A DNA stretch of 64,000 bases from Macrostomum lignano. Lineage: Eukaryota. Below, piece by piece: positions 609 through 59,154 of this stretch. A program made the translations under genes and the position numbers. Positions within the stretch are counted from its first letter, which is position 1, and every line of letters starts with the position of its first letter. The notes beneath the pieces were generated by a model. That model saw only the letters and a program-made list of their open reading frames with translations. It was not told the DNA's origin and did no database searches. The stretch is from NCBI GenBank assembly GCA_002269645.1, contig NIVC01000061.1, positions 744,001-808,000 of the forward strand. The letters are read 5' to 3'.

Positions 609-29070
<28,462 letters not shown>

Positions 29071-29867: not shown

Positions 29868-30476
29868 CTACTTAGGCACAGGCTTAACAACGTGAGCGCA
29901 GTCGTATTTGCCGCGCACAACTTTATGCTTGACGCCAATCAAGTCCTGACACCTGCCGCCTCTAACCAGCACCATATTGTGCTCCTGCAGGTTGTGCCCG
30001 ATGCCAGGCACGTAGGCCGTGATCTCGCGACCGTTGGACAGGCGGACTCGGACGCATCGCCGATTGGCCGAATTCGGCTTCTTCGGCTTACGAATCAGAG
30101 TTCGCAGTACAACGCCTTTCATAAACGGCCGGCCGTCCATGTGCCGATTGGGCGGCCGCTTCTTCATGATCGGCCCGTAGCGGGCCATGCGGTTCAGCAG
30201 GTTGTCGTCTTCCACGCAGGTTGGCAACTCGATGCTCCACCGGCTGCGAGGCACCACGGCTGTTTCGTCGAACAGTTCAAGGGAATCAGTGTTAGAGAAT
30301 CGCCGCTTGATGGTGCTGACAAAGCGAACTGGCAAGGACTGGAGCGCCGACAAGCAGGGAGTTCTGGTGGCTGCTGGCACTGCCAATGCTGTCTGCAGCC
30401 GGCCGCCTAGCAGCACTCGCTGGCATGCTGTGGAGGCTACCGACTGAGCAAGCGGCCTCATCAATCTGGCCAGCAT
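29868..30476 (-). CDS. MRPS12: Mitochondrial ribosomal protein S12 (uS12m), single coding exon
   Basis: ATG at 30476 gives an Arg/Ala/Leu-rich, acid-poor targeting-like leader [13 protein letters not shown]; S12 core [35 protein letters not shown]...[13 protein letters not shown]...[13 protein letters not shown]. Confidence 0.93.
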
Positions 30477-30627
30477 CCCGGGAATTGATTTCGATTTTCT
30501 ATAAATACGATTTGTGTGACGTATTGCACACCCGCGGCTATACAGCATTAAAAAACAATCAAAAGCACGTGATAATCGAATCAGGTAAGATATATTCACA
30601 CTCATTACCTTTATATGTTAGCTTTAA

Positions 30628-32478
30628 CCTTCAGCGGGCCCTCACTCAGCTCCTTCAGCGGACCCTCCCTCAGATCCTTCAGCGGACCCTCCCTCAGATC
30701 CTTGAGCGGGCCCTCCCTCAGATCCTTCAGCGGACCCTCCCTCAGATCCTTCAGCGGGCCCTCCCTCAGGTTCTTCAGCGGGCCCTCCCTCAGATCCTTC
30801 AGCGGGCCCTCCCTCAGGTCCTTCAGCGGGCCCTCCTTCAGGTCCTTCAGCGGGCCCTCCCTCAGATCCTTCAGCGGGCCCTCCCTCAGATCCTTCAGCG
30901 GGCCCTCCCTCAGATCCTTCAGGGGGCCCTCCCTCAGATCCTTCAGCGGGCCCTCCCTCAGATCCTTCAGCGGGCCCTCCCTCAGATCTTTTAGAGGACC
31001 CTCCCTCAGGTCCTTCAGCGGGCCCTCCCTCAGATCTTTTAGAGGACCCTCCCTCAGATCCTTCAGCGGGCCTTCACTCAGATCCTTCAGCAGGCCTTCA
31101 CTCAGATCCTTCAGCGGGCCTTCTCTCAGATCCTTCAGCGGGCTCAGACCCTTCAGCGGGCTCAGACCCTTCAGCGGGCCCTCCCTCAGATCCTTCAGCG
31201 GGCCCTCCTTCAGGTCCTTCAGCGGGCCCTCCCTCAGATCCTTCAGCGGGCCCTCCCTCAGATCCTTCAGCGGGCCCTCCCTCAGATCCTTCAGCGGGCC
31301 CTCCCTCAGATCCTTCAGCGGGCCCTCCCTCAGATCCTTCAGCGGGCCCTCCCTCAGATCTTTTAGAGGACCCTCCCTCAGGTCCTTCAGCGGGCCCTCC
31401 CTCAGATCCTTCAGCGGGCCCTCCCTCAGATCCTTCAGCGGGCCCTCCCTCAGATCCTTCAGCGGGCCCTCCCTCAGATCCTTCAGCGGGCCCTCCCTCA
31501 GATCTTTTAGAGGACCCTCCCTCAGATCCTTCAGCGGGCTCAGACCCTTCAGCGGGCCCTCCCTCAGATCCTTCAGCGGGCCCTCCCTCAGATCTTTTAG
31601 AGGACCCTCCCTCAGGTCCTTCAGCGGGCCCTCCCTCAGATCCTTCAGCGGGCCCTCCCTCAGATCCTTCAGCGGGCCCTCCCTCAGATCCTTCAGCGGG
31701 CCTTCACTCAGATCCTTCAGCAGGCCTTCACTCAGATCCTTCAGCGGGCCTTCCCTCAGATCCTTCAGCGGGCTCAGACCCTTCAGCGGGCCCTCCCTCA
31801 GATCCTTCAGCGGGCCCTCCCTTAGATCCTTCAGCGGGCCCTCCCTCAGATCCTTCAACGGGCCTTCCCTCAGATCCTTCAGCGGGCCCTCCCTTAGATC
31901 CTTCAGCGGGCCCTCCCTCAGACCCTTCAGCGGGCCCTCCCTCAGATCCTTCAACGGGCCTTCACTCAGATCCTTCAGCGGGCCTTCACTCAGATCCTTC
32001 AACGGGCCTTCACTCAGATCCTTCAGCGGGCCTTCACTCAGACCCTTCAGCGGGCTCAGATCCTTCAGCAGGCCCTCCCTCAGATCCTTCAGCGGGCCCT
32101 CCCTTAAATCCTTCAGCGGGCCCTCCCTCAGATCCTTCAGCGGGCCCTCCCTCAGATCTTTTAGAGGACCCTCCCTCAGATCCTTCAGCGGGCCTTCACT
32201 CAGATCCTTCAGCAGGCCTTCACTCAGATCCTTCAGCGGGCCTTCCCTCAGATCCTTCAGCGGGCTCAGATCCTTCAGCGGGCCCTCCCTCAGATCCTTC
32301 AGCGGGCCCTCCCTTAAATCCTTCAGCGGGCCCTCCCTCAGATCCTTCAACGGGCCTTCACTCAGATCCTTCAGCGGGCCTTCACTCAGACCCTTCAGCG
32401 GGCCCTCCCTCAGATCCTTCAGCGGGCCTTCACTCAGATCCTTCAGCGGGCCTTCCCTCAGATCCTTCAGCGGGCCCT
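30628..32478. repeat. 24-bp minisatellite (CAGATCCTTCAGCGGGCCCTCCCT), about 75 copies, with 15-bp half units
   Basis: Direct reading. Confidence 0.95.
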
Positions 32479-36131: not shown

Positions 36132-39100
36132 TCAGCTGTGAATGGCCTTGTCCAGGTGATTTGGAGCGTCAGCAAACCAAGACTTGAGCTTGAAGGCTTC
36201 GGCCAGCAGCAGGGTGACCTCCTCGTCGCCCCACTGATGCGTTGGCAGGTCCTGCAGCATCAGCATGAGGCCTTGGAAGTCCGATTCGCGTTTGAGGTCG
36301 CGCGAGAAGCGCAGTAGGAATGCAGCGCACACGTACAGGTGAAAATGTGAGAAGCCGTCAACTTCAGACTGCGGGATTCATGAGATGTGGCGTGAAGAAT
36401 CTCCATCAAATTAGAGGCATTTGAAATCAGTTCTAAATTTTTGCAGGACTGTCCCACAATTCTGCCCATTCCGCGCTCTCCTGAGCACACTGTGCGCTGG
36501 CAGCCACTCATGCACACAGGGTGTTACAGCGGCTCTGACTTTCTAAGCGTCAGGCATGTGCACTCTCTGTGCCTTGGGGTGGGAACTAATAGAACTCATT
36601 AGAATTATTACTGTAGAATCTCATTAGAGCTTATACAATCTTACTAGGAGAACTAATAGCATCTCATTGGAACTAATACAATCTTATTAGGGAAACTAAT
36701 GGCATCTCATTAGGGAAACTAATAGCATCTCATTGTTGGAACTAATAGAATCTCATTAGGGGAACTAAAAGCATCTCATTAGGGAAACTAATAGCATTTC
36801 ATTAGGGAAACTAATAGCATCTCATTAGGGAACTAATAGCATCCAATTAGGGGAATTAATAGCATCTCATTAAGGGAACTAATTACATCTTATTGGAACT
36901 AATAGAATCTCATTGTTGAAACAAATAGAATCTCATTAGAGCTAATAGCTGTAATTCTACTGTTATTAGACACTATTAGATTCTACTATTATACACCCAT
37001 AATGGCCAACCATCAAGGCACCGAGGGTGTGCATTCCAGATGATGGGAAAGTCAGGGCGGCTGTACACTCCATGTAAATTGCCTCAGCGCTGGTTGTGAA
37101 ACGATATCGTCAAAGGGCTCCCTGCGAATTTTGTTTTTTTTCTAACCCGCTTGTCAGAAACTCACGTGATACGTGTCCCACAGCCGGATAATGCAGCGCA
37201 AAGGAATCTCCCGCATTAGTAAATTATTCATCCAGCGGAAGGCGAATTGCAGGTACTCAACATCGTGCCGTTCCAGGTGCGAATCCAAATCACCTGATAA
37301 ATAAATTTGGGAATAAAGACGGGTTCAGAGAGGCTTTTGGATTGGGATTTACGATCATAATAAATTTTTACGGCTAAATCTATGGCAATATGGAATATAA
37401 AAGCTACGTAGTTTACCTGAAGAGGGGCAAGATTACTAGTCTAATATACTAGTTAAACATTATGAATAAAAATAGACAAATTAGAGATTATAAAAGCTAC
37501 CCCAAGGGGGGGGGCAAAACAGCTAGTCTAATATACTAATTGAACATTATGAATATGCATAGACAGATAGAAATTATAAAAGCTACCCCAGGGGGGGGGC
37601 AAATCGGCTAGTCTAATATACTAATTAAACATTATGAATATGCATAGACAGATTAGAAATTGTAAAAGCTACCCCAAGGGGGGCAAATTGGCTAGTCTAA
37701 TATACTAATTGAACATTATGAATATACATAGGCAGATTAGAGTCGATAAAAGCTGGGACTGACTACTAGTCAAAAATGCCAGAATTGCCTAATACGAAGA
37801 AACTTTATTAATTAGCTATCTCACTACCCACCATCAACTCGTTGTATAATCTTCCTGAGTGCCAGCACATTCTGCTGGATGCCAGGCTGCGGGAACACGA
37901 AGTTCTCCTGTATGGTGTCCAGCAGTGCCGACAGGGACCAATAGCAGTCTGCCTCGATGCTGGCTAATTCACTATCGTTCGGCGGCTCGCCGCGCAATCT
38001 CAAACGATCGCTCGAGTCAACGTCTACAGTGCAATATTCGGATAGGTAAACTATGAAATATGGCGTTACAAGGTCATTCATGCCCTGCACGTAGGTGCTC
38101 GCCGGTCGGCGCATGCTCCAGATGAATAGTATTCGGGCGAACACCTGGCAAAAGGTAAATTAAAATGAGGTGACAAATAGCTAAATTCAATGAAAAATTT
38201 CTACTAGTCTGAGCTACTGCACGTTTGTTAAATTTTCAAATATATATATAGACCTATTACTTTTACGTTTTACCGATACTAATAGCCCACCCCAATCATC
38301 AGTGACCCCTCTCGCAACGATCCAGTGGGTCAAAACTGTACAATAATTCTACACCACTAAAGTACAGTCATGCCGCAGACCATAGACTATACTGTACAAT
38401 AATTCTACACCACTAAAGTACAGTCATGCCGCGGACCATAGACTATACTGTACAATAATTCTACACCACTAAAGTACAGTGATTCCGCGGACCATAGACT
38501 ATACTGTACAATAATTCTACACCACTAAAGTACAGTCATGCCGCGGACCATAGACTATACTGTACAATAATTCTACACCTCTAAAGTACAGTGATTCCGC
38601 GGACCATAGACTATACTGTACAATAATACCACACCACTAAAGTACAGTCATGCGAATTCGCGCAGACCATAGACTATACTGTACAATAATTCTACACCAC
38701 TAAAGTACAGTGATTCCGCGGACCATAGACTATACTGTACAATAATTCTACACCACTAAAGTACAGTGATTCCGCGGACCATAGACTATACTGTACAATA
38801 ATTCTACACCACTAAAGTACAGTCATGCCGCGGACCATAGACTATACTGTACAATAATTCTACACCTCTAAAGTACAGTGATTCCGCGGACCATAGACTA
38901 TACTGTACAATAATACCACACCACTAAAGTACAGTCATGCGAATTCGCGCAGACCATAGACTATACTGTACAATAATTCTACACCACTAAAGTACAGTGA
39001 TGCCGCAGACCATAGACTATACTGTACAATAATTCTACACCACTAAAGTACAGTGATGCCGCGGACCATAGACTATACTGTCAATAATTCCACACCACTA

Positions 39101-40885
39101 AAGTACAGTCATGCCGCGGACCATAGACTATACTGTCAATAATTCCACACCACTAAAGTACAGTCATGCCGCGGACCATAGACTATACTGTACAATAACT
39201 ACTTGTCATTTGTCTACATTCCATGCCTGATTTTGAAAGTGCCAAAACTAAACTAATACTCAGTTTAAATTGAGCATGCCTAAATCATACTCATTCTCAA
39301 ATTTTGCAATCCAATCTCTTTATAACTAAGTTTAAGGAAACCATTTAAGACACGCATCGACATGGTAGGTGCCATAAACTATTACCTGATGAAACTGAGT
39401 ATGCTCAGCCAGCACAGTCATGCGCACCAAATCCTTCAATATCTGCTTGTACATGCCGTCGTTAGCCGGCTGAGTTCTCTTGCCATAGTATTCGTCAACC
39501 ATGCCAGCGTACATTCGTCGTTTCTCTTGAAGCACCGCGGCCCGCCTAGAGGAATTCACCGGTGCATATTTAATGAGCAGTTTCCACACAATCGGCGCAC
39601 AGTATGAGTGACGCCCGACCAGGCCAGCCGGCGCAGCTCGTCCATATTAGTGGCGGCAGCGCCTATCAGGGAGGCGAATTTCGACTCCTTCTCAACTGTG
39701 TCGGCCGACTTGCCGCCGCTAGCGTTACTGCCGCCGCCGCCAGCGTCCTCTGATAGTCTACGGTGGGCGCAATAGATGCTGTGAATCTGAGCTGTCGAAT
39801 AGCCACTCTGACGGACGCCTAGACCGGGCGCTGGAAGCTTCGGTTTTGCTCGGTTTGGCTGCTGCCGTTGCTGTTGTGGTTGCTGCTGCTGCTGCTGCTG
39901 CTGCAGTTCTTTGGCAGATTGAGCAGAAGATGCGACTGAAGGAGTCGCCTTGCTGCTGCTGCTGCCAACCGATCGGCGATGATTCTCAATCACCTGCGGG
40001 TGCGCGGCTATAAATATAGCAAGCGGCATCCTCAACTGGCGCTGACCCGTTCCGAGAACTAATTGCCCAGCAACCTCTTATGGAGGATTCAACAACACGG
40101 GAGCCCTAAAATTAACGTGGCCTGAAATTGGTATCCAGGTCAAGAAGCGTCCCAGAATCATTTGCGTCGTCATAGAAACCTTTCAGAGTCGTTGCATGTT
40201 AAAACAGGTAAAAGGAAAAAGTAAAAGTCGCCAAAGAGAGTCGCCTAAGATTCAATTTTTGGCGTTTAATTGTCTGCGACTCTGGGGCGCTTTTATACTG
40301 ACTCTGGGGCCGTTGAGTCGTATCTGAGGCGTGCCGGAGTCGCTGTAAAATCACTGAGTTGATTCTAAAGCGCATTTATAACAACTCTATTTAGCCTACT
40401 TTGGTTAGTAGAAAGTAAAGCGCTGACACAGCGACTCTTGGACGACTCTTTACGATTCTACAACTCACGTGATGCACTCGTGACTCAACAATCGCCTTTC
40501 CATCGCATTACAATAGTTTGAGTCGTGAGTTGTTTACAAGGACTCTTTAGCAATTCTCGTCATGGTAACGTTTTCAATGGGTTGATCATATATATTACAT
40601 CACTGCTAATTACCTGATTAGCGGTGGCGCTAGCCAATGAAGCCGAGTGCTGTACCTGGCTGAGAAACTCCTCATCATTGGCATCCCAGACGTCGTCGGT
40701 GCCCCGGTTGAACTTGTCAAAAGCCAGCCGGCTCTGTGAATTGTTTGACGCAATGATTGCCGCTTTGACAGTCTGCTGGCCTAGCTGAGAGGGAGAGCAG
40801 GCCGAAGATGGCCACCAGGTCTGTACAGCTTGCTAGCGCAATTGATGGAGCCAAAGTGCTGTACGCTGCTGCGTGTAGGAGGCAT
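36132..40885 (-). CDS. TBC1D22: TBC1 domain family member 22 (Rab-GAP); 5' end uncertain; two 1-nt frameshifts
   Basis: Exons: about 40885/40868-40614, 39993-39386, 38144-37832, 37293-37166, 36368-36132. Motifs: SVQHFG, DDVWDANDEE, LRRLAWSG..VR[P]IVWKLL, YVQGMNDLVTPYF, EADCYW, YLQFAFRWMNNLLMREIPLRCIIRLWDTY, GFSHFHLYVCAAFL, LAEAFKLKSWF. Confidence 0.9.
36486..37080. mobile_element. Foldback/MITE-like element: imperfect long inverted arms around an internal ~22-bp minisatellite
   Basis: GTGTTACAGCGGCTCTGACTTTC...TGCCTTG (about 36520-36575) mirrors the reverse complement of 37016-37070; internal CTAATAGCATCTCATTAGGGAA repeats. Confidence 0.5.
37440..37769 (+). mobile_element. Head-to-tail array of ~85-bp Helitron-like mini units
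   Basis: Units 37440-37526, 37527-37611, 37612-37695, 37696-37769. Each begins TCTAATATACTA and ends CTAG; the first three carry a CCCC(A)AGGGG hairpin before the CTAG; junctions read CTAG|TC. Confidence 0.55.
38335..39198. repeat. 56-bp satellite in a TBC1D22 intron
   Basis: TACTGTACAATAATTCTACACCACTAAAGTACAGTCATGCCGCGGACCATAGACTA, about 15 copies. Confidence 0.9.
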
Positions 40886-49787: not shown

Positions 49788-52700
49788 ATGGCCCAGTCAA
49801 CTCGATCAGGTTCGGGCGGGTCCGCTGACGGTCGTTTCGAATTACCCGCCATCAACACCCGGCATAACCCGCACCCACACAGGTGCGTCCACATCAGCTC
49901 CCTGCACGGCTGCCAGGTGCCCAGCGTGGTCGATGATCAAATGCCGCTGCATCTGCACGTGTGAGTTCCTTTGGTGCTGAGTTCCCTTGGTGCTGAGTTC
50001 CTTTGGTGCTGAGTACCTTTGGTGCTGAGTTCCTTGGGTGCTGATTACCTGTTCGTGGGTGCTGATTACCTGTTCGTGGGTGCTGAGTACCTGTTCGTGG
50101 GTGCTGAGTACCTGTTCGAGGGTGCTGAGTACCTGTTCGTGGGTGCTGAGTACCTGTTCGTGGGTGCGACTCTGAATTCCTGCTCACCAGATGAGTTCAA
50201 TTCGCTGTCCAGTATCATTACTAAATATTCGTTAAAAACCAAAATTGAAATTAAATTTAAAGAATTTTACTTTTTAATTTTTTGCGCACTACTGACAGAC
50301 ACTAATTACCAGTAGTAAAAGCAGTACATTGAGAGTTTAGCTGATCTTCAATTAAACTTGCTGGAAATCCGCTCAGCTGCTACCCGACAGCCCGGCCGGA
50401 GGTGCTGCGCGCGGCCGCTGCCAAGCCCAGCGAGCAGCTCAACGGTCTGGCGAAACCTGAGCACCTTGAGCAGTTTTCTCGGCTGCTGGCTAAGGATAAG
50501 TCCGAGTCCTGTAGTGCCTGGCGCGGTGCGCTGTCCAGCCTCACCCGGGAGACTTTCGGCGTCGGCGGCGACGGCAGCAGCGGTGACGGCGCCGTTCCGG
50601 AACGGCCCGGCCGGACTCGAGCGGGTGAAACTTGGTTTTTCGGGGTGATAGTCTAGAGTGCCAGAAGGGTGACGGAAGGGTTACAGCACAGAGTGACAGA
50701 AGGGTGACGGCAGAGGGTGCTATAACAGTGACACTATTATGGTCTCTCTCTGCCTCTCTCCCTGCTTCTCTCCCTGCCTCTCCCTCTGCCTCTCTCCCTG
50801 CCTCTCTCCCTGCCTCTCCCCCTGCCTCTCTCCCTGCCTCTCCCCCTGCCTCTCTCCCTGCCTCTCTCCCTGCCTCTCTCCCTGCCTCTCTCCCTGCCTC
50901 TCCCTCTGCCTCTCCCTCTGCCTCTCTCCCTGCCTCTCTCCCTGCCTCTCCCCCTGCCTCTCTCCCTGCCTCTCTCCCTGCCTCTCTCCCTGCCTCTCTC
51001 CCTGCCTCTCCCTCTGCCTCTCTCCCTGCCTCTCTCCCTGCCTCTCTCCCTGCCTCTCCCCCTGCCTCTCCAGATTAAGAAATTAACCCAAGCCTGTGTA
51101 AAGCTGTTCGTCCTTAAAATAAGCACTATATTGTTTTTTATTTATCACCGTCCTCATGCGCTAGAGAATTTCTCTTGTTTGTATAGTGTTGGAGTAAACG
51201 CGGATAAGCCTTAAGCCGCGTACTAAGAGATGTGTAGAGAAGCAGGGAAGAGGCAGGAGAGAGGCAGGGAGAGATGCAGTAGGGGGGAGAGGGTGACAAA
51301 AGATAGATATACTCAACAACATTAAATTTCAGCTCAGTTTTGACTTTTGAGTGACGCAACTTGCGCCACGCGACGCAGAGTTGGTCTGGATGAGGAGGGA
51401 TTGGGAAGAGCGGAGGGCGAAGATTGGAATAATTGAAGCTTCCACTCGGTTTTAATTGTTTTTTTCAAGCATTTTTTAATATCAAAATGGCTGGCCAGGT
51501 GATAGACACTGGTCGAAAGGCACTCATGCTCACTGGGACAAAGGGTGGCGACTTTTCAATGTTTCTGAGTATAGATAGATACCTAGAGACAAAGAATTTT
51601 TATACAGTGGATTGTTTTTCTCTCTATAGGTACTTCAGTTTGTAAAATCTAACAAATTGAATTAAAGTAGCATCATAATAATTATGTACATATTTCTAAC
51701 AGTGTACAATGCTGGTTACAAACGGTAAATCAGAATAGTTCTGTGAGAGTCCGACTTGACAAAGTTTCGTTTCAATGAAACGATCGATTATTTATAATTG
51801 GGCTTGGGGTGGTCTGCTAGCCTCGGTGTACAATGGAAATGGAGAAGCTGTCTGATTGGTCGGACAGCCGGACCTCTCTCAGACCCTCTCCCATTGAACA
51901 TCCACCCCAACCCCCAACCCCCACCCCAACCCAGACTGTTGCATTAGCACAAGGGTTTGCAAAGGCAATTTTCAAATTATCATTCTAAATAATTAGGGGT
52001 GGTTACACTGCACAATATAAACTCATGCGTCTTCAACCATCGTGTGTGTTTCAATACCGATTGCCAATCTAATTGACTTAGCGAATTGTCAAAAATGTCA
52101 GCTCGACTGCATCCGTTGTTGATTGCGTTGGCTCTTTGGGCCTCATTGACGCTGGCAGCCCCTCCCTTCGGAACTGACACCGGCAACAACGGCAGTGACG
52201 ACGACTGGAAAGTGTCCGAAACTGGTGCTGGCAGCAAGGACGACGACTGGAAAGTGTCAAAAACCGGTGCTGCTAAAAATGACGACGACTGGAAAATAGC
52301 GAAAACCGGTGCTGGCAGCAAGGAAGACGATTGGAAAGTGCCCAAAACCGTTGCTGGCAACAAGGAAAACGCTGGTACCAAAGACAACGACTCAAATGTG
52401 GCCAAAACCGGTGCTGCTAAAAAGAACGACGACTGGAAAGTGCCCAAAACCAATGCTGGCAGCAAGGACGACGACTGGAAAGTGACCAAAAGCGGTGCTG
52501 GTAGCAAGGACGACGACTGGAAAGTGCCCAAAACCAATGCTGGCAGCAAGGACGACGACTGGAAAGTGCCCAAAACCAATGCTGGCAGCAAGGACGACGA
52601 CTGGAAAGTGCCCAAAACCAATGCTGGCAGCAAGGACGACGACTGGAAAGTGACCAAAAGCGGTGCTGGTAGCAAGGACGACGACTGGAAAGTGCCCAAA

Positions 52701-55700
52701 ACCAATGCTGGCAGCAAGGACGACGACTGGAAAGTGCCCAAAACCAATGCTGGCAGCAAGGACGACGACTGGAAAGTGACCAAAAGCGGTGCTGGTAGCA
52801 AGGACGACGACTGGAAAGTGCCCAAAACCAATGCTGGCAGCAAGGACGACGACTGGAAAGTGCCCAAAACCAATGCTGGCAGCAAGGACGACGACTGGAA
52901 AGTGCCCAAAACCAATGCTGGCAGCAAGGACGACGACTGGAAAGTGACCAAAAGCGGTGCTGGTAGCAAGGACGACGACTGGAAAGTGCCCAAAACCAAT
53001 GCTGGCAGCAAGGACGACGACTGGAAAGTGCCCAAAACCAATGCTGGCAGCAAGGACGACGACTGGAAAGTGACCAAAAGCGGTGCTGGTAGCAAGGACG
53101 ACGACTGGAAAGTGCCCAAAACCAATGCTGGCAGCAAGGACGACGACTGGAAAGTGCCCAAAACCAATGCTGGCAGCAAGGACGACGACTGGAAAGTGTC
53201 CAAAACCAATGGTGGCAGCAAGAACGACGACTGGAAAGTGTTTAAAACCAATGGTGGCAGCAAGAACGACGACTGGAAAGTGCCCAAAACCAATTCTGGC
53301 AGCAAGGACGACGACTGGAAAGTGCCCAAAACCAATGCTGGCAGCAAGGACGACGACTGGAAAGTGCCCAAAACCAATGCTGGCAGCAAGGACGACGACT
53401 GGAAAGTGACCAAAAGCGGTGCTGGTAGCAAGGACGACGACTGGAAAGTGCCCAAAACCAATGCTGGCAGCAAGGACGACGACTGGAAAGTGCCCAAAAC
53501 CAATGCTGGCAGCAAGGACGACGACAGGAAAGTGACCAAAAGCGGTGCTGGTAGCAAGGACGACGACTGGAAAGTGCCCAAAACAAATGCTGGCAGCAAG
53601 GACGACGACTGGAAAGTGCCCAAAACCAATGCTGGCAGCAAGGACGACGACTGGAAAGTGTCCAAAACCAATGGTGGCAGCAAGAACGACGACTGGAAAG
53701 TGTTTAAAACCAATGGTGGCAGCAAGAACGACGACTGGAAAGTGTCCAAAACCAATTCTGGCAGCAAGGACGACGACTGGAAAGTGTCCAAAACCAATGC
53801 TGGTAGCAAGGATGACGACTGGAAAGTGTCAAAAACCGGTGCTGCTAAAAAGGACGACGACTGGAAAGTGTCCAAAACCAATGGTGGCAGCAAGAACGAC
53901 GACTGGAAAGTGTCCGAAACCGGTGCTGGCAGTAAGGAAAACACTGGTACCAAAGACGACGAGTGGAAAGTGTCCAAAACCAATGCTGGCAGCAAGGACG
54001 ACGACTGGAAAGTGTCCGAAACCGGTGCTGCTAAAAAGGACGACGACTGGAAAGTGTCCAAAACCGGTGCTGGCAGTAAAGAAAACACTGGTACCAAGGA
54101 CGACGATTGGAAAGTGCCCAAAACCAATGCTGGTAGCAAGGAAGACGACTGGAAAGTGCCCAAAACCGTTGCTGGCAACAAGGAAAACACTGGTACCAAG
54201 GAAGACGACTGGAAAGTGCTCAAAACCGTTGCTGGTAGCAAGGACGACGACTGGAAAGTGTCCGAAACCGGTGCTGCTAAAAAGTACGACGACTTGAAAG
54301 TGTCCAAAACCAATGGTGGCAGCAAGGACAACGACAGGAAAGTGGCAAAAACTGGTGCTGACAGCAACGGAAAGAGTATCTGGAAGGCAGCCAACACCGG
54401 ATCTGAAAGCAGCAACGACGACTGGAAGGCAGCCAACACCGGATCTGAAAGCAGCAACGACGACTGGAAGGCAGCCAACATCGGTTCTGAAAGCAGCAAC
54501 GACGACTGGAAGGCAGCCAACACCGGATCTGAAAGCAACAACGACGACTGGAAGGCAGCCAACACCGGTTTTGAAAGCAAAAACGACAACTGGAAGGCAG
54601 CCAACACCGGTTCTGAGAGCAACAACGACAACTGGAAGGCAGCCAACACTGGTACTGAAGGCAACGACAACTGGAAAGCAGCCAACACCGGATCTGAGAG
54701 CAGCAACGACAACTGGAAGGCAGCCAACACCGGTTCTGAGAGCAGCAACGACAACTGGAAGGCAGCCAACACCGGTTCTGAGAGCAGCAACGACAACTGG
54801 AAGGCAGCCAACACCGGATCTGAAAGCAGCAACAACTGGAAGGCAGCCAACACCGGATCTGAAAGCAAAAACGACGCCTTGAAGGCAGCCAACACCGGAT
54901 CTGAAAGCAGCAACGACGACTGGAAGGCAGCCAACATCGGTTCTGAAAGCAGCAACGACGACTGGAAGGCAGCCAACACCGGATCTGAAAGCAACAACGA
55001 CGACTGGAAGGCAGCCAACACCGGTTTTGAAAGCAAAAACGACAACTGGAAGGCAGCCAACACCGGTACTGAAGGCAACGACAACTGGAAAGCAGCCAAC
55101 ACCGGATCTGAGAGCAGCAACGACAACTGGAAGGCAGCCAACACCGGTTCTGAGAGCAGCAACGACAACTGGAAGGCAGCCAACACCGGTTCTGAGAGCA
55201 ACAACGACAACTGGAAGGCAGCCAACACTGGTACTGAAGGCAACGACAACTGGAAAGCAGCCAACACCGGATCTGAGAGCAGCAACGACAACTGGAAGGC
55301 AGCCAACACCGGATCTGAAAGCAGCAACAACTGGAAGGCAGCCAACACCGGATCTGAAAGCAAAAACGACGCCTTGAAGGCAGCCAACACCGGATCTGAA
55401 AGCAGCAACGACGACTGGAAGGCAGCCAACACCGGATCTGAAAGCAGCAACGACGACTGGAAGGCAGCCAACACCGGATCTGAAAGCAGCAACGACGACT
55501 GGAAGGCAGCCAACACCGGTTTTGAAAGCAAAAACGACAACTGGAAGGCAGCCAACACCGGTACTGAAGGCAACGACAACTGGAAAGCAGCCAACACCGG
55601 ATCTGAAAGCAGCAACAACTGGAAGGCAGCCAACACCGGATCTGAAAGCAAAAACGACGCCTTGAAGGCAGCCAACACCGGATCTGAAAGCAGCAACGAC

Positions 55701-58700
55701 GACTGGAAGGCAGCCAACACCGGTACTGAAGGCAACGACAACTGGAAGGCAGCCAACACCGGATCTGAAAGCAGCAACGACAACTGGAAGGCAGCCAACA
55801 CCGGTTCTGAGAGCATCAACGACAACTGGAAGGCAGCCAACACCGGTACTGAAGGCAACGACAACTGGAAAGCAGCCAACACCGGATCTGAAAGCAGCAA
55901 CGACAACTGGAAGGCAGCCAACACCGGTTCTGAGAGCATCAACGACAACTGGAAAGCAGCCAACACCGGATCTGAGAGCAGCAACGACAACTGGAAGGCA
56001 GCCAACACCGGTACTGAAGGCAACGACAACTGGAAGGCAGCCAACACCGGATCTGAGAGCAGCAACGACAACTGGAAGGCAGCAAACACTGGTACTGAAG
56101 GCAACGACAACTGGAAGGCAGCCAACACCGGATCTGAAAGCAGCAACGACAACTGGAAGGCAGCCAACACCGGTTCTGAGAGCATCAACGACAACTGGAA
56201 GGCAGCCAACACTGGTACTGAAGGCAACGACAACTGGAAGGCAGCCAACACCGGATCTGAAAGCAGCAACGACAACTGGAAGGCAGCCAACACCGGTTCT
56301 GAGAGCAACAACGACAACTGGAAGGCAGCCAACACCGACTTCCAGTCAGCCAGCAGCGAGAACAAAGACAGCAACTACATTGAGTACAAGACAAACAGTC
56401 AGCAGGGCTCAGACTCTGAGAGTTCCTTCAATGCCAACAAGAAGGACGGCGCGAGCGGTGCCGAATTCAGCAAGCAGTACAACACTTTAGACAATGCCTT
56501 CAGCGACAGCAGCGACCAGCAGCAGCAGCAAGAAGAACAGCAGGAAGTCGGTAGCGCCAATCTCAACAGTTACGACTGGAACTTCGGCGACAACAATGAA
56601 CTCCGCGCTGATTACTGAGCGCTTTGAATTGGCTTTTGATGTCAATGCGAACTTCATGCTGTTACTGAAGTCGTTTCTTTCGTTTGATTTCTGATTAGTA
56701 ATGATTCGTTGTTTTTGTTCAAAATATACTACTTGTTGATAAAACAATTCGCTTGGTTTTTGTCGCTGATTTTTGACTGACTTTTATGAAAATAGGGTTA
56801 AAAAACAAGTATTTTATAGATTTGAAAGTACATGGGATGGATGGAAAAATGGAAATCACTAGGTATATTGTGGATAGTTTCTCGTCAATATAGGATTTCC
56901 GATGTTGTGAAGCTAATGTGAATACCGAAGATAATGTATGGCATTATTCTAATAAGAGCCTATACAAGCAGTTGCTTGGATTATACACTGCGTGTTCTGA
57001 ATTCTGAACATTTTGGAGTGTGCGGATCCCTCAGTAACATGGGGTGTTTTCTTAGTGACCTGGGGTATTCCCTTAGTGACATGGGGTATTCCCTTAGTGA
57101 CATGGGGTATTCCTTCAGTAACATGGGATATTCCCTCAGTGACATGGAGTGTTCCCTTAGTGACATGGGGTATTCCCTTAGTGACATGGGGTATTCCCTT
57201 AGTGACATGGGGTATTCCCTTAGTGACATGGGGTATTCCCTTAGTGACATGGGGTATTCCCTTGGTGACATGGGGTATTCCCTCAGTAAAATGAGGGAAT
57301 TATGTATTCCCTCCTTATTTCAACATAAAAACTCATCCAGTCTCCTCCCTCATCAAACTGCAAATCTCAGGCCCACCTGCAAATCCCCATCTGGCCAAGG
57401 AGGCGCAGCGACTGTACAGTCCGCTGACGGGCCGCCTGGTGGCCGGTGGCGACGCTGCAGCGACATCTGCCATCGGCAAGCTGGAGCTGCTGCAGGGCTC
57501 CGTGATAAGCATGCTGTGCCGCATCCTGCAGACTCAGGACCGAGCCGCTGTGCAGGCCTGGCTGATGGCCGCTTCGCCTAGAGAGCGCGAACTCGTGACC
57601 GACATTATCCAATCCTCGGTGGCCAACCGGGACGAGTATTTTGTGGTGAGGCTCGACTGAGTTAATTGGGTAGAATTTTACTGCCGAAACTCGGCTGAGA
57701 TAGAGAGACTTGAGCATAATTATAGGGGAGTAGAGGAAGGGAGAAGGGGAGTAGAGTGATGGAGAAGGGGAGTAGAGGGATGGAGAAGGGGAGTAGAGTG
57801 AGGGAGAAGGGGAGTAGAGTGAGGGAGAAGGGGAGTAGAGTGAGGGAGAAGGGGAGTAGAGTGATGGAGAAGGGGAGTAGAGGGATGGAGAAGGGGAGTA
57901 GAGTGAGGGAGAAGGGGAGTAGAGTGAGGGAGAAGGGGAGTAGAGTGATTGAGAAGGGGAGTAGAGTGATGGAGAAGGGGAGTAGAGTGAGGGAGAAGGG
58001 GAGTAGAGTGAGGGAGAAGGGGAGTAGAGTGAGGGAGAAGGGGAGTAGAGTGAGGGAGAAGGGGAGTAGAGTGAGGGAGAAGGGAGTAGAGTGAGGGAGA
58101 AGGGGAGTAGAGTGAGGGAGAAGGGGAGTAGAGTGAGGGAGAAGGGGAGTAGAGTGAGGGAGAAGGGGAGTAGAGTGAGGGAGAAGGGGAGTAGAGTGAG
58201 GGAGAAGGGGAGTAGAGTGAGGGAGAAGGGGAGTAGAGTGAGGGAGAAGGGGAGTAGAGTGATGGAGAAGGGGAGTAGAGTGAGGGAGAAGGGGAGTAGA
58301 GTGAGGGAGAAGGGGAGTAGAGTGAGGGAGAAGGGGAGTAGAGTGAGGGAGAAGGGGAGTAGAGTGAGGGAGAAGGGGAGTAGAGTGAGGGAGAAGGGGA
58401 GTAGAGTGAGGGAGAAGGGGAGTAGAGTGAGGGAGAAGGGGAGTAGAGTGAGGGAGAAGGGGAGTAGAGTGAGGGAGAAGGGGAGTAGAGGGATGGAGAA
58501 GGGGAGTAGAGTGAGGGAGAAGGGGAGTAGAGGGATGGAGAAGGGGAGTAGAGTGAGGGAGAAGGGGAGTAGAGTGAAGGAGAAGGGGAGTAGAGGGAGG
58601 GAGAAGTGAAGTAGAGTGAGGGAGAGAGAGAAAGAGAAAATAAATGAATGAGAAACAGAAATACTTTGCGCAATAAAAGATTTCCATCAGAGCAGCCAAT

Positions 58701-58910
58701 ACCCACCAACCTCCAGCAGGAGTCGCTGCCGGCCGCATGCAGCATCTGCCGCACCGAGTCCAGGCTGCCAACGCGGAGCTCGAGAAAGACTGTCACCACC
58801 GACAGCGGCAGCGGCGGCGACGGCGCCACCAAGCCGTCAACGGCTGCCGAGTCGGCGGGGAACTCGGCGAGTTCCAGCCGGCAGCCGACCGCGGTCCAGC
58901 TGAGTCTTGA
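49788..58910 (+). CDS. TBATA: TBATA/SPATIAL-family protein, 3-4 exons
   Basis: Exons 49788-49960, 50377-50624, 57371-57635 (or read-through to the stop at 57660) and probable 58691-58910, with compatible phases. Recalled family motifs: TRHNPHPHRCVHISSLHG..V..V.D, AWRGALSSL, LYSPLTGRL, MLCRILQTQDRAAVQAWLMAASPRERELV. Confidence 0.68.
49961..50165. repeat. ~18-21-bp minisatellite starting at the TBATA intron-1 donor
   Basis: GTGAGTTCC..., then CTGAGTTCC..., then GAGTACCTGTTCGTGGGTGCT. Confidence 0.85.
50745..51070. repeat. 12-bp pyrimidine repeat (CTGCCTCTCTCC)
   Basis: Direct reading. Confidence 0.9.
52016..52021 (+). promoter_or_regulatory. Candidate TATA box of the nested repeat-protein gene
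   Basis: TATAAA about 75 bp upstream of ATG 52095; an ATTGG (reverse CCAAT) lies near 51855. Confidence 0.4.
52095..56618 (+). CDS. Uncharacterised secreted tandem-repeat protein (1507 aa), single exon, nested in TBATA intron 2
   Basis: Stop-free 4.5-kb ORF. Signal peptide MSARLHPLLIALALWASLTLA|AP; block A about 50 x GSKDDDWKV(P/S/T)K(T/S)(N/G)A; block B about 45-50 x WKAANTG(S/T/F)ESSND(N/D); unique acidic C-terminus. All repeat length variation is in multiples of 3; TATAAA lies upstream. Confidence 0.85.
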   Translation: MSARLHPLLIALALWASLTLAAPPFGTDTGNNGSDDDWKVSETGAGSKDDDWKVSKTGAAKNDDDWKIAKTGAGSKEDDWKVPKTVAGNKENAGTKDNDSNVAKTGAAKKNDDWKVPKTNAGSKDDDWKVTKSGAGSKDDDWKVPKTNAGSKDDDWKVPKTNAGSKDDDWKVPKTNAGSKDDDWKVTKSGAGSKDDDWKVPKTNAGSKDDDWKVPKTNAGSKDDDWKVTKSGAGSKDDDWKVPKTNAGSKDDDWKVPKTNAGSKDDDWKVPKTNAGSKDDDWKVTKSGAGSKDDDWKVPKTNAGSKDDDWKVPKTNAGSKDDDWKVTKSGAGSKDDDWKVPKTNAGSKDDDWKVPKTNAGSKDDDWKVSKTNGGSKNDDWKVFKTNGGSKNDDWKVPKTNSGSKDDDWKVPKTNAGSKDDDWKVPKTNAGSKDDDWKVTKSGAGSKDDDWKVPKTNAGSKDDDWKVPKTNAGSKDDDRKVTKSGAGSKDDDWKVPKTNAGSKDDDWKVPKTNAGSKDDDWKVSKTNGGSKNDDWKVFKTNGGSKNDDWKVSKTNSGSKDDDWKVSKTNAGSKDDDWKVSKTGAAKKDDDWKVSKTNGGSKNDDWKVSETGAGSKENTGTKDDEWKVSKTNAGSKDDDWKVSETGAAKKDDDWKVSKTGAGSKENTGTKDDDWKVPKTNAGSKEDDWKVPKTVAGNKENTGTKEDDWKVLKTVAGSKDDDWKVSETGAAKKYDDLKVSKTNGGSKDNDRKVAKTGADSNGKSIWKAANTGSESSNDDWKAANTGSESSNDDWKAANIGSESSNDDWKAANTGSESNNDDWKAANTGFESKNDNWKAANTGSESNNDNWKAANTGTEGNDNWKAANTGSESSNDNWKAANTGSESSNDNWKAANTGSESSNDNWKAANTGSESSNNWKAANTGSESKNDALKAANTGSESSNDDWKAANIGSESSNDDWKAANTGSESNNDDWKAANTGFESKNDNWKAANTGTEGNDNWKAANTGSESSNDNWKAANTGSESSNDNWKAANTGSESNNDNWKAANTGTEGNDNWKAANTGSESSNDNWKAANTGSESSNNWKAANTGSESKNDALKAANTGSESSNDDWKAANTGSESSNDDWKAANTGSESSNDDWKAANTGFESKNDNWKAANTGTEGNDNWKAANTGSESSNNWKAANTGSESKNDALKAANTGSESSNDDWKAANTGTEGNDNWKAANTGSESSNDNWKAANTGSESINDNWKAANTGTEGNDNWKAANTGSESSNDNWKAANTGSESINDNWKAANTGSESSNDNWKAANTGTEGNDNWKAANTGSESSNDNWKAANTGTEGNDNWKAANTGSESSNDNWKAANTGSESINDNWKAANTGTEGNDNWKAANTGSESSNDNWKAANTGSESNNDNWKAANTDFQSASSENKDSNYIEYKTNSQQGSDSESSFNANKKDGASGAEFSKQYNTLDNAFSDSSDQQQQQEEQQEVGSANLNSYDWNFGDNNELRADY
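57025..57290. repeat. 21-bp minisatellite (TTCCCTTAGTGACATGGGGTA)
   Basis: Direct reading. Confidence 0.9.
57724..58625. repeat. 21-bp purine-rich minisatellite (GGAGTAGAGTGAGGGAGAAGG)
   Basis: About 43 copies. Confidence 0.95.
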
Positions 58911-59154
58911 AGGCGGCCTGACCGGGACGGGAAAACCGTGGGCTGCCCGCGCTGCCGCTCTGACCCCGGTGACGGCGGCCGGCCGAAGGACCAGCCTGCC
59001 CTCGCTGCTGGCTGGGAAGGCCGGGGACCGTGGCAGAAGAATGTGAGGGGGAGGGGCGGATGGGGAGAGGCGAAAAAGGATGAGGAAGGCGGACGGTAGA
59101 AAAAGAGCTGATGGCAGAGACATGGGCAGATAAAGAGAAAGGAAAGGGAATGGG

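Follow-up and report, generated by a model that had tools for sequence, protein, structure and literature searches.

A putative unannotated single-exon gene for a secreted, tryptophan-anchored repeat protein in an intron of a SPATIAL/TBATA-like gene of Macrostomum lignano

Results

Locus and architecture of the repeat gene

We analyzed a window of 64,000 nucleotides of the Macrostomum lignano genome (assembly GCA_002269645.1, contig NIVC01000061.1, positions 744,001 to 808,000, forward strand; positions below are those of the window unless a contig is named). Within it, a first-pass annotation had proposed a nested single-exon gene for a secreted, Cys-free protein composed of two tandem repeat blocks. 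The open reading frame (ORF) in question, termed the repeat gene in the following, occupies NIVC01000061.1:796095-800618, equivalent to 52095-56618 of the window (+ strand), and is unbroken from ATG to TGA over 1507 codons. The + frame is open across 52086..56618, its first ATG is the one at 52095, giving 1507 amino acids (aa), and an in-frame TGA is found at 52074, 21 nt 5' of this ATG. The locus comprises the following elements:

52016..52021, + strand: TATAAA, candidate TATA box, the sole TATA-like hexamer within 300 nt upstream, 74 nt before the ATG (weak when taken alone)
52095..52157, + strand: start codon and 21-residue signal-peptide-like N-terminus MSARLHPLLIALALWASLTLA, with an upstream in-frame stop; passes a crude signal-peptide filter
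52158..52196, + strand: short unique N-terminal stretch of the mature chain, APPFGTDTGNNGS
52197..54383, + strand: block A, ~50 units of 42 nt, consensus KVPKTNAGSKDDDW, charge-neutral
54384..56321, + strand: block B, ~47 units of 42 or 39 nt, consensus KAANTGSESSNDNW, net charge -49
56322..56615, + strand: unique 98-residue acidic C-terminal tail rich in S/N/D/Q, with no transmembrane or glycosylphosphatidylinositol-like hydrophobic end
56616..56618, + strand: TGA stop, followed by an AT-rich flank of 33% GC
51980..56374, - strand: antisense ORF of 1464 codons with the repeat LSLLLSDPVLAAFQ, starting with TTG; its first ATG is codon 64, inside the array

The encoded N-terminus (MSARLHPLLIALALWASLTLA followed by APP) has a basic n-region with Arg, a 16-residue hydrophobic core and T-L-A at positions -3 to -1, and according to the -3/-1 rule the putative signal peptide would be cleaved after A21. 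No hydrophobic segment other than this one was found in the 1507-aa chain. The remainder of the protein is dominated by ~97 Trp-anchored units, with (D/N)-W-K as the conserved triplet of the unit. Cutting the protein after each Trp yields 69 units of 14 aa, 13 units of 13 aa and a few double or insert-bearing units. Tandem Repeats Finder (TRF) reports a period of 42 in both arrays (52197-54367 and 54380-56337), which account for ~91% of the repeat gene and contain higher-order repeats of 102-186 nt. In block A, an in-frame insert of 18 nt (ENTGTK/ENAGTK, 6 aa) is seen four times, while block B shows two kinds of in-frame 3-nt deletion, so that some of its units are 13-mers.

The composition of the mature chain is equally unusual, with 0 Cys, 1 Met, 1 His and 92 Trp and with K (14%), D (14%), N (13%) and S (12%) as main constituents; the whole chain contains only three Arg, two N-glycosylation sequons and seven K/R pairs. 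Block A is electrically balanced (155 K+R versus 151 D+E, net +4), and block B (-49) and the tail (-11) together carry a net charge of -60. Tryptic-type peptides of the repeats are AANTGSESSNDNWK, TNAGSK and DDDWK. Near the stop codon, on its downstream side, hexamers resembling a poly(A) signal are limited to AATATA (56723) and GATAAA (56738). A recount of the ORF, the repeats, the charges, the tail and the TATA box reproduced the first-pass description in every one of these points.

Coding evidence and in-window controls

Because the window supplies its own negative controls, the key question is whether the locus is more than a MINISATELLITE with an open frame. Tandem arrays constitute 36% of the window; for the M. 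lignano genome as a whole, a share of 15% has been reported for simple and tandem repeats (PMC5730564). Control arrays in the window with a period divisible by 3 have two to six open frames. For example, a 24-bp minisatellite of ~77 units at 30628-32478 holds ORFs of 628 aa on the + strand (FSGPSLRS...) and 579 aa on the - strand (LKDLREGP...), and its length variants are only -6 and -9 nt, all of them in frame. ORF length and in-frame indels are thus weak evidence: the first-pass statement that every indel among the repeats keeps the frame is correct, all kinds being multiples of 3, though the control at 30628-32478 behaves likewise. Other ORFs that arise from arrays and lack gene-like flanks, 369 and 467 aa long (STPLLPH..., SPSLYSP...), were observed in 21-bp minisatellites at 57724-59123 (-) and 57027-57287, just 3' of the host gene described below.

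One possible explanation of the locus would be that two adjacent, non-coding intronic 42-bp minisatellites are stop-free in one frame by chance, which would make the ORF fortuitous or dead. The array content of the window, the control ORFs and the lack of an annotated protein or transcript model in any homeolog speak for this view, as does the openness of the antisense frame, which extends over 1464 codons across the repeat gene. The unique part of this antisense ORF is compositionally flat at all three codon positions, and we regard it as a by-product of the repeats, not as a gene.

The flanks and the internal structure of the repeat gene point in the other direction. The 30628-32478 ORFs start and stop within ~25 nt of their array and have no unique coding flanks, whereas the frame of the repeat gene continues into unique sequence on both sides. 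At the 5' end, 34 codons beyond the array include the ATG and the signal-peptide-like start, and only 3 of the 116 ATG-initiated ORFs of at least 60 aa in the window, the repeat gene among them, pass the signal-peptide filter. At the 3' end, the 98 codons of the tail contain no stop in this frame and one to five in each of the other five; the tail stays open in 1.9% of shuffles. The GC content at third codon positions of the tail (73%) is gene-like, compared with 68% and 75% in the MRPS12 gene and the FReD exon, two verified coding sequences of the window, and its first and second codon positions are A-rich. Directly past the stop codon, GC falls abruptly from 52% to 33%.

In addition, the two diverged arrays hold one frame and one register. 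The consensus units of blocks A and B are identical at 27/42 nt in register, the next best shift reaching 19/42, so that they can be traced to one ancestral unit whose two descendant subfamilies stayed in frame throughout. All four kinds of length change in the repeat gene are multiples of 3, in contrast to ~4/10 kinds in the control arrays with a period divisible by 3. Over the ~97 units (~4.1 kb of array) there are no frameshifts, and +/-1 changes are the commonest kind in the other arrays of the window. The distinct unit variants comprise 12 synonymous and 24 non-synonymous ones, and none makes a stop; with 19% synonymous changes expected, this gives P = 0.03, a soft statistic because repeat variants are not independent events. 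Altogether, these features make it quite probable that the + strand of the locus encodes a functional protein, or did so until very recently, and the explanation by non-coding arrays appears unlikely to us. The signal-peptide-like start, the unique tail and the shared register support the first-pass proposal of a secreted repeat protein of two blocks that lacks Cys and is encoded by a single exon.

Nesting within a SPATIAL/TBATA-like gene

As a next step, we considered the surroundings of the repeat gene, which the earlier annotation had described as nested. Two exons of a SPATIAL/TBATA-like host gene enclose it on the same strand:

49788..49960, + strand: host exon 1 (MAQSTRSG...HLHV), matching Pfam PF15256 positions 3-33 with E 0.002; GTGAG donor at 49961
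57341..57660, + strand: host last exon, matching PF15256 positions 161-201 (the C-terminal 41) with E 2e-11; stop at 57658-57660

Exon 1 scores 18.9 bits against PF15256, under the cut-off of 27, and the last exon reaches 45.1 bits against the gathering score of 27, above it. The donor of exon 1 fits the motif GT[G/A]AG of M. lignano splice donors (PMC8629364), and the acceptor of the last exon, CAG at 57338-57340, follows from splice phase arithmetic. With good splice sites, joining exon 1 directly to the last exon breaks the frame, so that middle exons must exist. With 542 nt in these middle exons, the sum of 173, 542 and 320 nt corresponds to 344 codons plus a stop, and the homeologous contig NIVC01001134.1 carries an annotated 344-aa SPATIAL gene with PF15256, an identical first exon and the equivalent ATG. 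Enumeration of exon chains for the middle exons gave 141 solutions, and a candidate exon 2 probably starts near 50377 (+). These data support the placement of the repeat gene in an intron of the host, on the same strand and with its own upstream stop and ATG.

Since the repeat gene lies within the host span and on its strand, it could alternatively be a giant alternative exon or an alternative 3' end of the SPATIAL-like gene, with the AG at 52080-52081 as a possible acceptor. The in-frame stop 21 nt before the ATG leaves only 18 nt for the acceptor of such a fusion, and this AG is outside the CAG context typical of M. lignano acceptors (PMC8629364). Furthermore, a signal peptide midway in a cytosolic SPATIAL protein makes little sense, and the homeologous 344-aa SPATIAL protein is not among the HMMER matches to the repeats and tail (see below). 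We consider this explanation barely credible.

The contigs NIVC01002891.1 and NIVC01001134.1 represent homeologous copies with 85-97% identity, which is consistent with the redundant assembly of the neopolyploid M. lignano (PMC5730564). Our comparison reached the window-equivalents ~51.5 kb and ~48.8 kb, both short of the ATG of the repeat gene. NIVC01001134.1 is collinear with the window up to ~51400 and then switches, ~700 nt before this ATG, to unrelated sequence that ends in a poly-C run. Insertion, deletion or rearrangement may underlie this switch, and the homeolog may or may not carry the repeat gene.

Search for relatives and annotation status

Next, we compared the repeat protein with known sequences. 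Neither the N-terminus with block-A units nor the tail with two block-B units had a match among 5.8 billion proteins, including the annotated M. lignano proteome. As the unique ends find no match in the annotated proteome, the gene is unannotated in all three homeologs, and the database records contained no gene with such a product. A Pfam scan of the whole protein gave no meaningful family, a sequence search of the PDB was empty, a scan of 48-59 kb against Rfam returned nothing, and the repeat peptides were not found in the literature. The single Pfam candidate, Tsi3 (26.1 bits, 0 stretches passing), was rejected as an artefact of summed repeats.

An exhaustive HMMER scan of 1.84 billion representative proteins resulted in 286 matches with E-values down to 6e-35, of which the best 150 were listed and eleven of the best-scoring ones inspected. 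These E-values are inflated, as chance similarity of one unit is multiplied by the copy number. The eleven were rejected as homologues: they are a mixture of proteins with a 14-residue period, namely proteins resembling phage tails, whose units read DNRPAVITGKDxxx or DLRWAVxNxVSGSx, a eukaryotic CAMSAP, an AANTTAIESNDMDI-repeat protein and others, and the unique ends remain untouched. The best matches, P0121, P0122, P0124, P0127, P0130 and P0131, seem by sequence to be of bacterial or phage origin and to resemble tail fibres, with long arrays of D-[LN]-R-[WP]-A-V-x-x-x-x-S/T-G-x-x. They have the same period as the repeat protein and share 5-6/14 positions with block A or B, but their matches are confined to the arrays, and neither unique end is matched. 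No Pfam family covers these repeats in the four proteins scanned, and P0127 has no solved structure in the PDB; judged by their sequences, these proteins seem to form an uncharacterised repeat family of their own.

The Pfam, PDB, 5.8-billion-protein and HMMER searches thus agree with the first-pass annotation, which had recognized no known family, and none of them gave a strong match to a described one. As far as sequence comparison reaches, the repeat protein is an orphan without detectable relatives. Gland products of M. lignano are often lineage-specific, equipped with a signal peptide and without homologues (PMC5977470). Repeat-rich proteins are also known to escape short-read transcriptomes (PMC8621496), and in the published genome analysis tandem repeats were masked with TRF for the estimates of repeats and duplications (PMC5730564). 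Two generations of annotation probably missed the gene because ~91% of it is array, which is hard for short-read transcript assembly; TRF masking may have added to this and also kept it out of the annotation.

Predicted fold and sequence physics

The first-pass annotation had suggested a beta-solenoid or a functional amyloid. Following this suggestion, the repeats of the same gene would fold, with one or two 14-mers per coil of a beta-solenoid or beta-roll, or as a functional amyloid, and a Trp ladder would run along a rigid fibre or rod. Disulfide-free coils of 14-15 residues are known, e.g. from the grass antifreeze beta-roll (Pfam PF21300), and strict periodicity with a near-invariant Trp fits a structural role. 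AlphaFold2 was run from single sequence on 250 aa of block A and on block B with the tail. It placed short strands on the repeats with a 28-residue period in block A and a 14-residue period in block B. The mean predicted local distance difference test (pLDDT) was 49.8 for block A and 50.2 for block B with the tail, the predicted template modelling scores were 0.38 and 0.37, and four of five models score 33-47. The tail (pLDDT 36-47) has no secondary structure and is predicted to be disordered.

A Foldseek search with these models gave no significant match, with best E-values of 2.4-2.8. The top-ranked, non-significant neighbours are all solenoids (FapC amyloid, MpAFP, LpxD, pectate lyase), and these names would describe the style of the models rather than support a fold. 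Compared with beta-rolls and solenoids such as PF21300, RTX, MpAFP and FapC, the repeat protein shares the strict short period, units rich in Gly/Asn/Asp/Thr and the low-confidence, strand-rich models, but it lacks any Pfam or significant structural match, has a far higher charge and places a bulky Trp in every unit. The units offer only three to four apolar residues per 14 and a very high content of charged and Asn/Ser residues, and no Pfam solenoid or repeat family was matched. At a pLDDT of ~50 and with no Foldseek E-value below 2, the models are of too low confidence for the assignment of a fold; we view a folded form as an improbable, though not negligible, outcome.

In block A, ~42% of residues are charged (fraction of positive residues, f+, 0.213; of negative residues, f-, 0.204), the charges are well mixed (kappa 0.10) and the Kyte-Doolittle hydropathy is -1.59. 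With a charged fraction >0.35, a net charge of ~0 and low hydropathy, block A corresponds to a strong polyampholyte. Block B is a weaker acidic polyelectrolyte (f+ 0.08, f- 0.16), and together with the tail it is as hydrophilic as block A, the mean hydropathy across the blocks being -1.5 to -1.6. The physics of the sequence would fit a disordered polyampholyte at least as well as a beta-solenoid.

Other features of the window

Besides the repeat gene and its host, the window contains a TBC1D22-like RabGAP gene at 36132-39645 (-), whose rebuilt 312-aa product equals PAA54542.1 and PAA71833.1 on two homeologous contigs. The annotation on the window's own contig is a 268-aa version (PAA92164.1), and an intron of this gene holds a 56-bp minisatellite at 38335-39198. 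A single-exon gene for the mitochondrial ribosomal protein uS12m (MRPS12) lies at 29868-30545 (-) and has three homeologous copies, with one residue differing between contigs. At 15281-19451 (-), we observed a long terminal repeat retrotransposon with an 822-codon ORF resembling reverse transcriptase, RNaseH and integrase and with overlapping protease-like and gag-like ORFs; its type was judged from the translations. Finally, an exon encoding a fibrinogen C-terminal globular domain (PF00147, E 1.5e-34) is located at 19856-20446 (-), where the annotation of the contig places a gene with a product of 3491 aa.

Discussion

Our analysis of sequence features suggests an unannotated, intron-less gene in an intron of a SPATIAL/TBATA-like gene, and in our estimate there is roughly an even chance that its product is a secreted, disordered material protein of a gland. 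According to this proposal, a 42-nt ancestral unit would have given rise to two arrays that grew by in-frame unequal crossing-over. The precursor, with its cleavable signal peptide, would release a soluble, Cys-free and extremely hydrophilic mature chain, neutral and polyampholytic in its N-terminal half and acidic and Asn/Ser-rich in its C-terminal half. The product would most likely be a material, rather than an enzyme, a receptor ligand or a peptide precursor. It might be part of a hydrated gland secretion, such as mucus, rhabdites, cement, adhesive-associated material or the matrix of the ejaculate, the tissue being our suggestion. Here, the regularly spaced (D/N)-W-K motifs could serve as 'stickers' that bind weakly and multivalently, separated by polar segments in the role of spacers, with cation-pi and pi-pi contacts, charge pairing with Asp clusters and possibly sea-water Ca2+/Mg2+ providing the forces.

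Several observations weigh against this proposal. No canonical AATAAA was found within 700 nt after the stop of the repeat gene, and no annotated protein resembling its tail or N-terminus is present at any of the three homeologous loci. If the gene were strongly expressed in a gland, its transcript should have given rise to partial models at the very least. The minisatellites of the window, as exemplified by 30628-32478, also yield long ORFs with only in-frame variants, the dN/dS signal (the ratio of non-synonymous to synonymous change) is weak (~0.47), and the selection statistics suffer from the non-independence of repeat variants noted above. The regular beta strands that AlphaFold2 puts on the repeats make an ordered fold possible, and the proposed sticker-spacer mechanism is drawn by analogy.

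The same signal peptide followed by many near-identical short units ending in W-K could also belong to a polyprotein, which the first-pass annotation had offered as an alternative. In this case, cleavage after the Lys following each Trp, with trimming, would release ~97 peptides such as VPKTNAGSKDDDW and AANTGSESSNDNW with roles as pheromones or in defence or signalling. The acidic residues in front of the site (DDDWK) are loosely reminiscent of activation peptides of the DDDDK type. However, neither the seven K/R pairs nor any furin-type sites bracket the units, and there is neither a Gly for amidation nor any W-G-K/R. As each block-A unit contains three Lys, Lys-directed cleavage would shred this block, and the two blocks would release two unrelated types of peptide. 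To our knowledge, ~97 copies also far exceed the copy numbers of neuropeptide precursors. We therefore set this alternative aside as very unlikely.

A material protein invites comparison with Mlig-ap1 and Mlig-ap2, which are adhesion proteins of the same organism. These are likewise large secreted gland proteins with tandem repeats and charged low-complexity regions (Wunderer et al. 2019; PMC6410801, PMC8621496), and they too were missed or fragmented by short-read transcriptomes and were recoverable only from the genome. They are built from Cys-rich vWD/C8/TIL, C-lectin, EGF, LDL and TSP-1 domains, strongly basic GRK-rich regions (ap1) and repeats of 221-255 aa (ap2) (PMC8621496). The repeat protein, in contrast, is without Cys or Pfam domains, has units of 13-14 aa and is neutral to acidic. 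In line with the first-pass annotation, which had seen no match to the Macrostomum adhesion proteins, it shares none of the domains or repeat types of these proteins, and none of the 150 best HMMER matches listed, nor of the eleven inspected, resembled a relative.

In a further possibility, the acidic half would bind Ca2+/Mg2+ or polycations as a counter-ion or ion-binding secretion, for example as a releasing factor of the duo-gland system directed at the GRK-rich Mlig-ap1. The net charge of -60 in block B and tail and the DDD clusters of block A are in line with this role. Moreover, polyanions block adhesion, and a secreted, negatively charged releasing molecule has been predicted (Wunderer et al., PMC6410801, PMC8621496). 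This molecule, however, is predicted to be small (PMC6410801), in contrast to a 160-kDa protein, and the N-terminal half of the repeat protein is neutral. Block B, with a net charge of about -1 for every 14 residues, has a modest charge density. This possibility is very unlikely in our view, and the repeat protein is a long-shot candidate for the anionic releasing factor.

Returning to the secreted, disordered material protein, an instructive parallel is the mussel foot protein Pvfp-1 of Perna viridis, a secreted adhesive of many short tandem repeats in which C-mannosyl- and 7-hydroxy-Trp beside Lys replace 3,4-dihydroxyphenylalanine and Thr is O-glycosylated (PMC4275877). The repeat protein likewise has W-K as its invariant pair, and PKT, Thr and Ser are frequent, but the repeats of Pvfp-1 are 10 aa long and basic, those of the repeat protein are neutral to acidic, and there is no homology between the two. 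The decapeptide consensus of Pvfp-1, reportedly described by Zhao et al. in 2009, is said to contain a W-x-x-W motif needed for C-mannosylation. In the repeat protein, WxxW, the motif of C-mannosylation of the TSR or Pvfp-1 type, is absent because its Trp residues are 13-14 positions apart, and with 0 Cys there is no W-x-x-C either.

In its physics, the repeat protein resembles the phase-separating polyampholytes and sticker-and-spacer proteins of the Das-Pappu type, sharing the charge mixing of block A, the low hydropathy and the evenly spaced aromatics. This is a physicochemical class and not a family, and its known examples are mostly intracellular. Two other types of protein do not apply. 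Gel-forming mucins often have 40% or more Ser+Thr+Pro in their Pro/Thr/Ser (PTS) domains and Cys-rich vWD/CK termini; in the mature repeat protein, these residues amount to ~22%, and Cys and a vWD domain are absent. Choline-binding or GW-type cell-wall-binding repeats are ~20 aa long and contain G-W-x-K and aromatic pairs; the units here have 14 aa and a single aromatic residue, and no CW_binding match was obtained in Pfam at E up to 1.

Altogether, it is well supported by the features described above that the locus holds a new orphan gene of a familiar general type, a secreted tandem-repeat gland protein, with an unusually regular, Trp-anchored design. Whether it founds a new class of extracellular material is a further question. 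In this scenario, the ~92 Trp-Lys pairs, set exactly one 14-mer apart, would form a beta-solenoid or functional amyloid with a Trp ladder of a kind not seen before or drive coacervation by cation-pi contacts, the two halves would have distinct roles in flatworm secretion, and the acidic half would possibly serve as a duo-gland releasing factor or glue modulator; we regard this scenario as very doubtful.

If expressed, the repeat gene would add a sizeable gland product of ~160 kDa to the secretome of M. lignano. Such a gap matters because work on adhesion, mucus and rhabdites of flatworms, and on their egg cement and seminal fluid, depends on transcript catalogues. In minisatellite-rich genomes, repeat-protein genes resemble non-coding arrays, and unique flanks are needed to tell them apart. 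With Trp-Lys every 14 residues, a neutral and an acidic block and no Cys, the protein presents an unusually clean natural 'sticker-spacer' layout, and it could serve as a model or template for bio-inspired wet materials.

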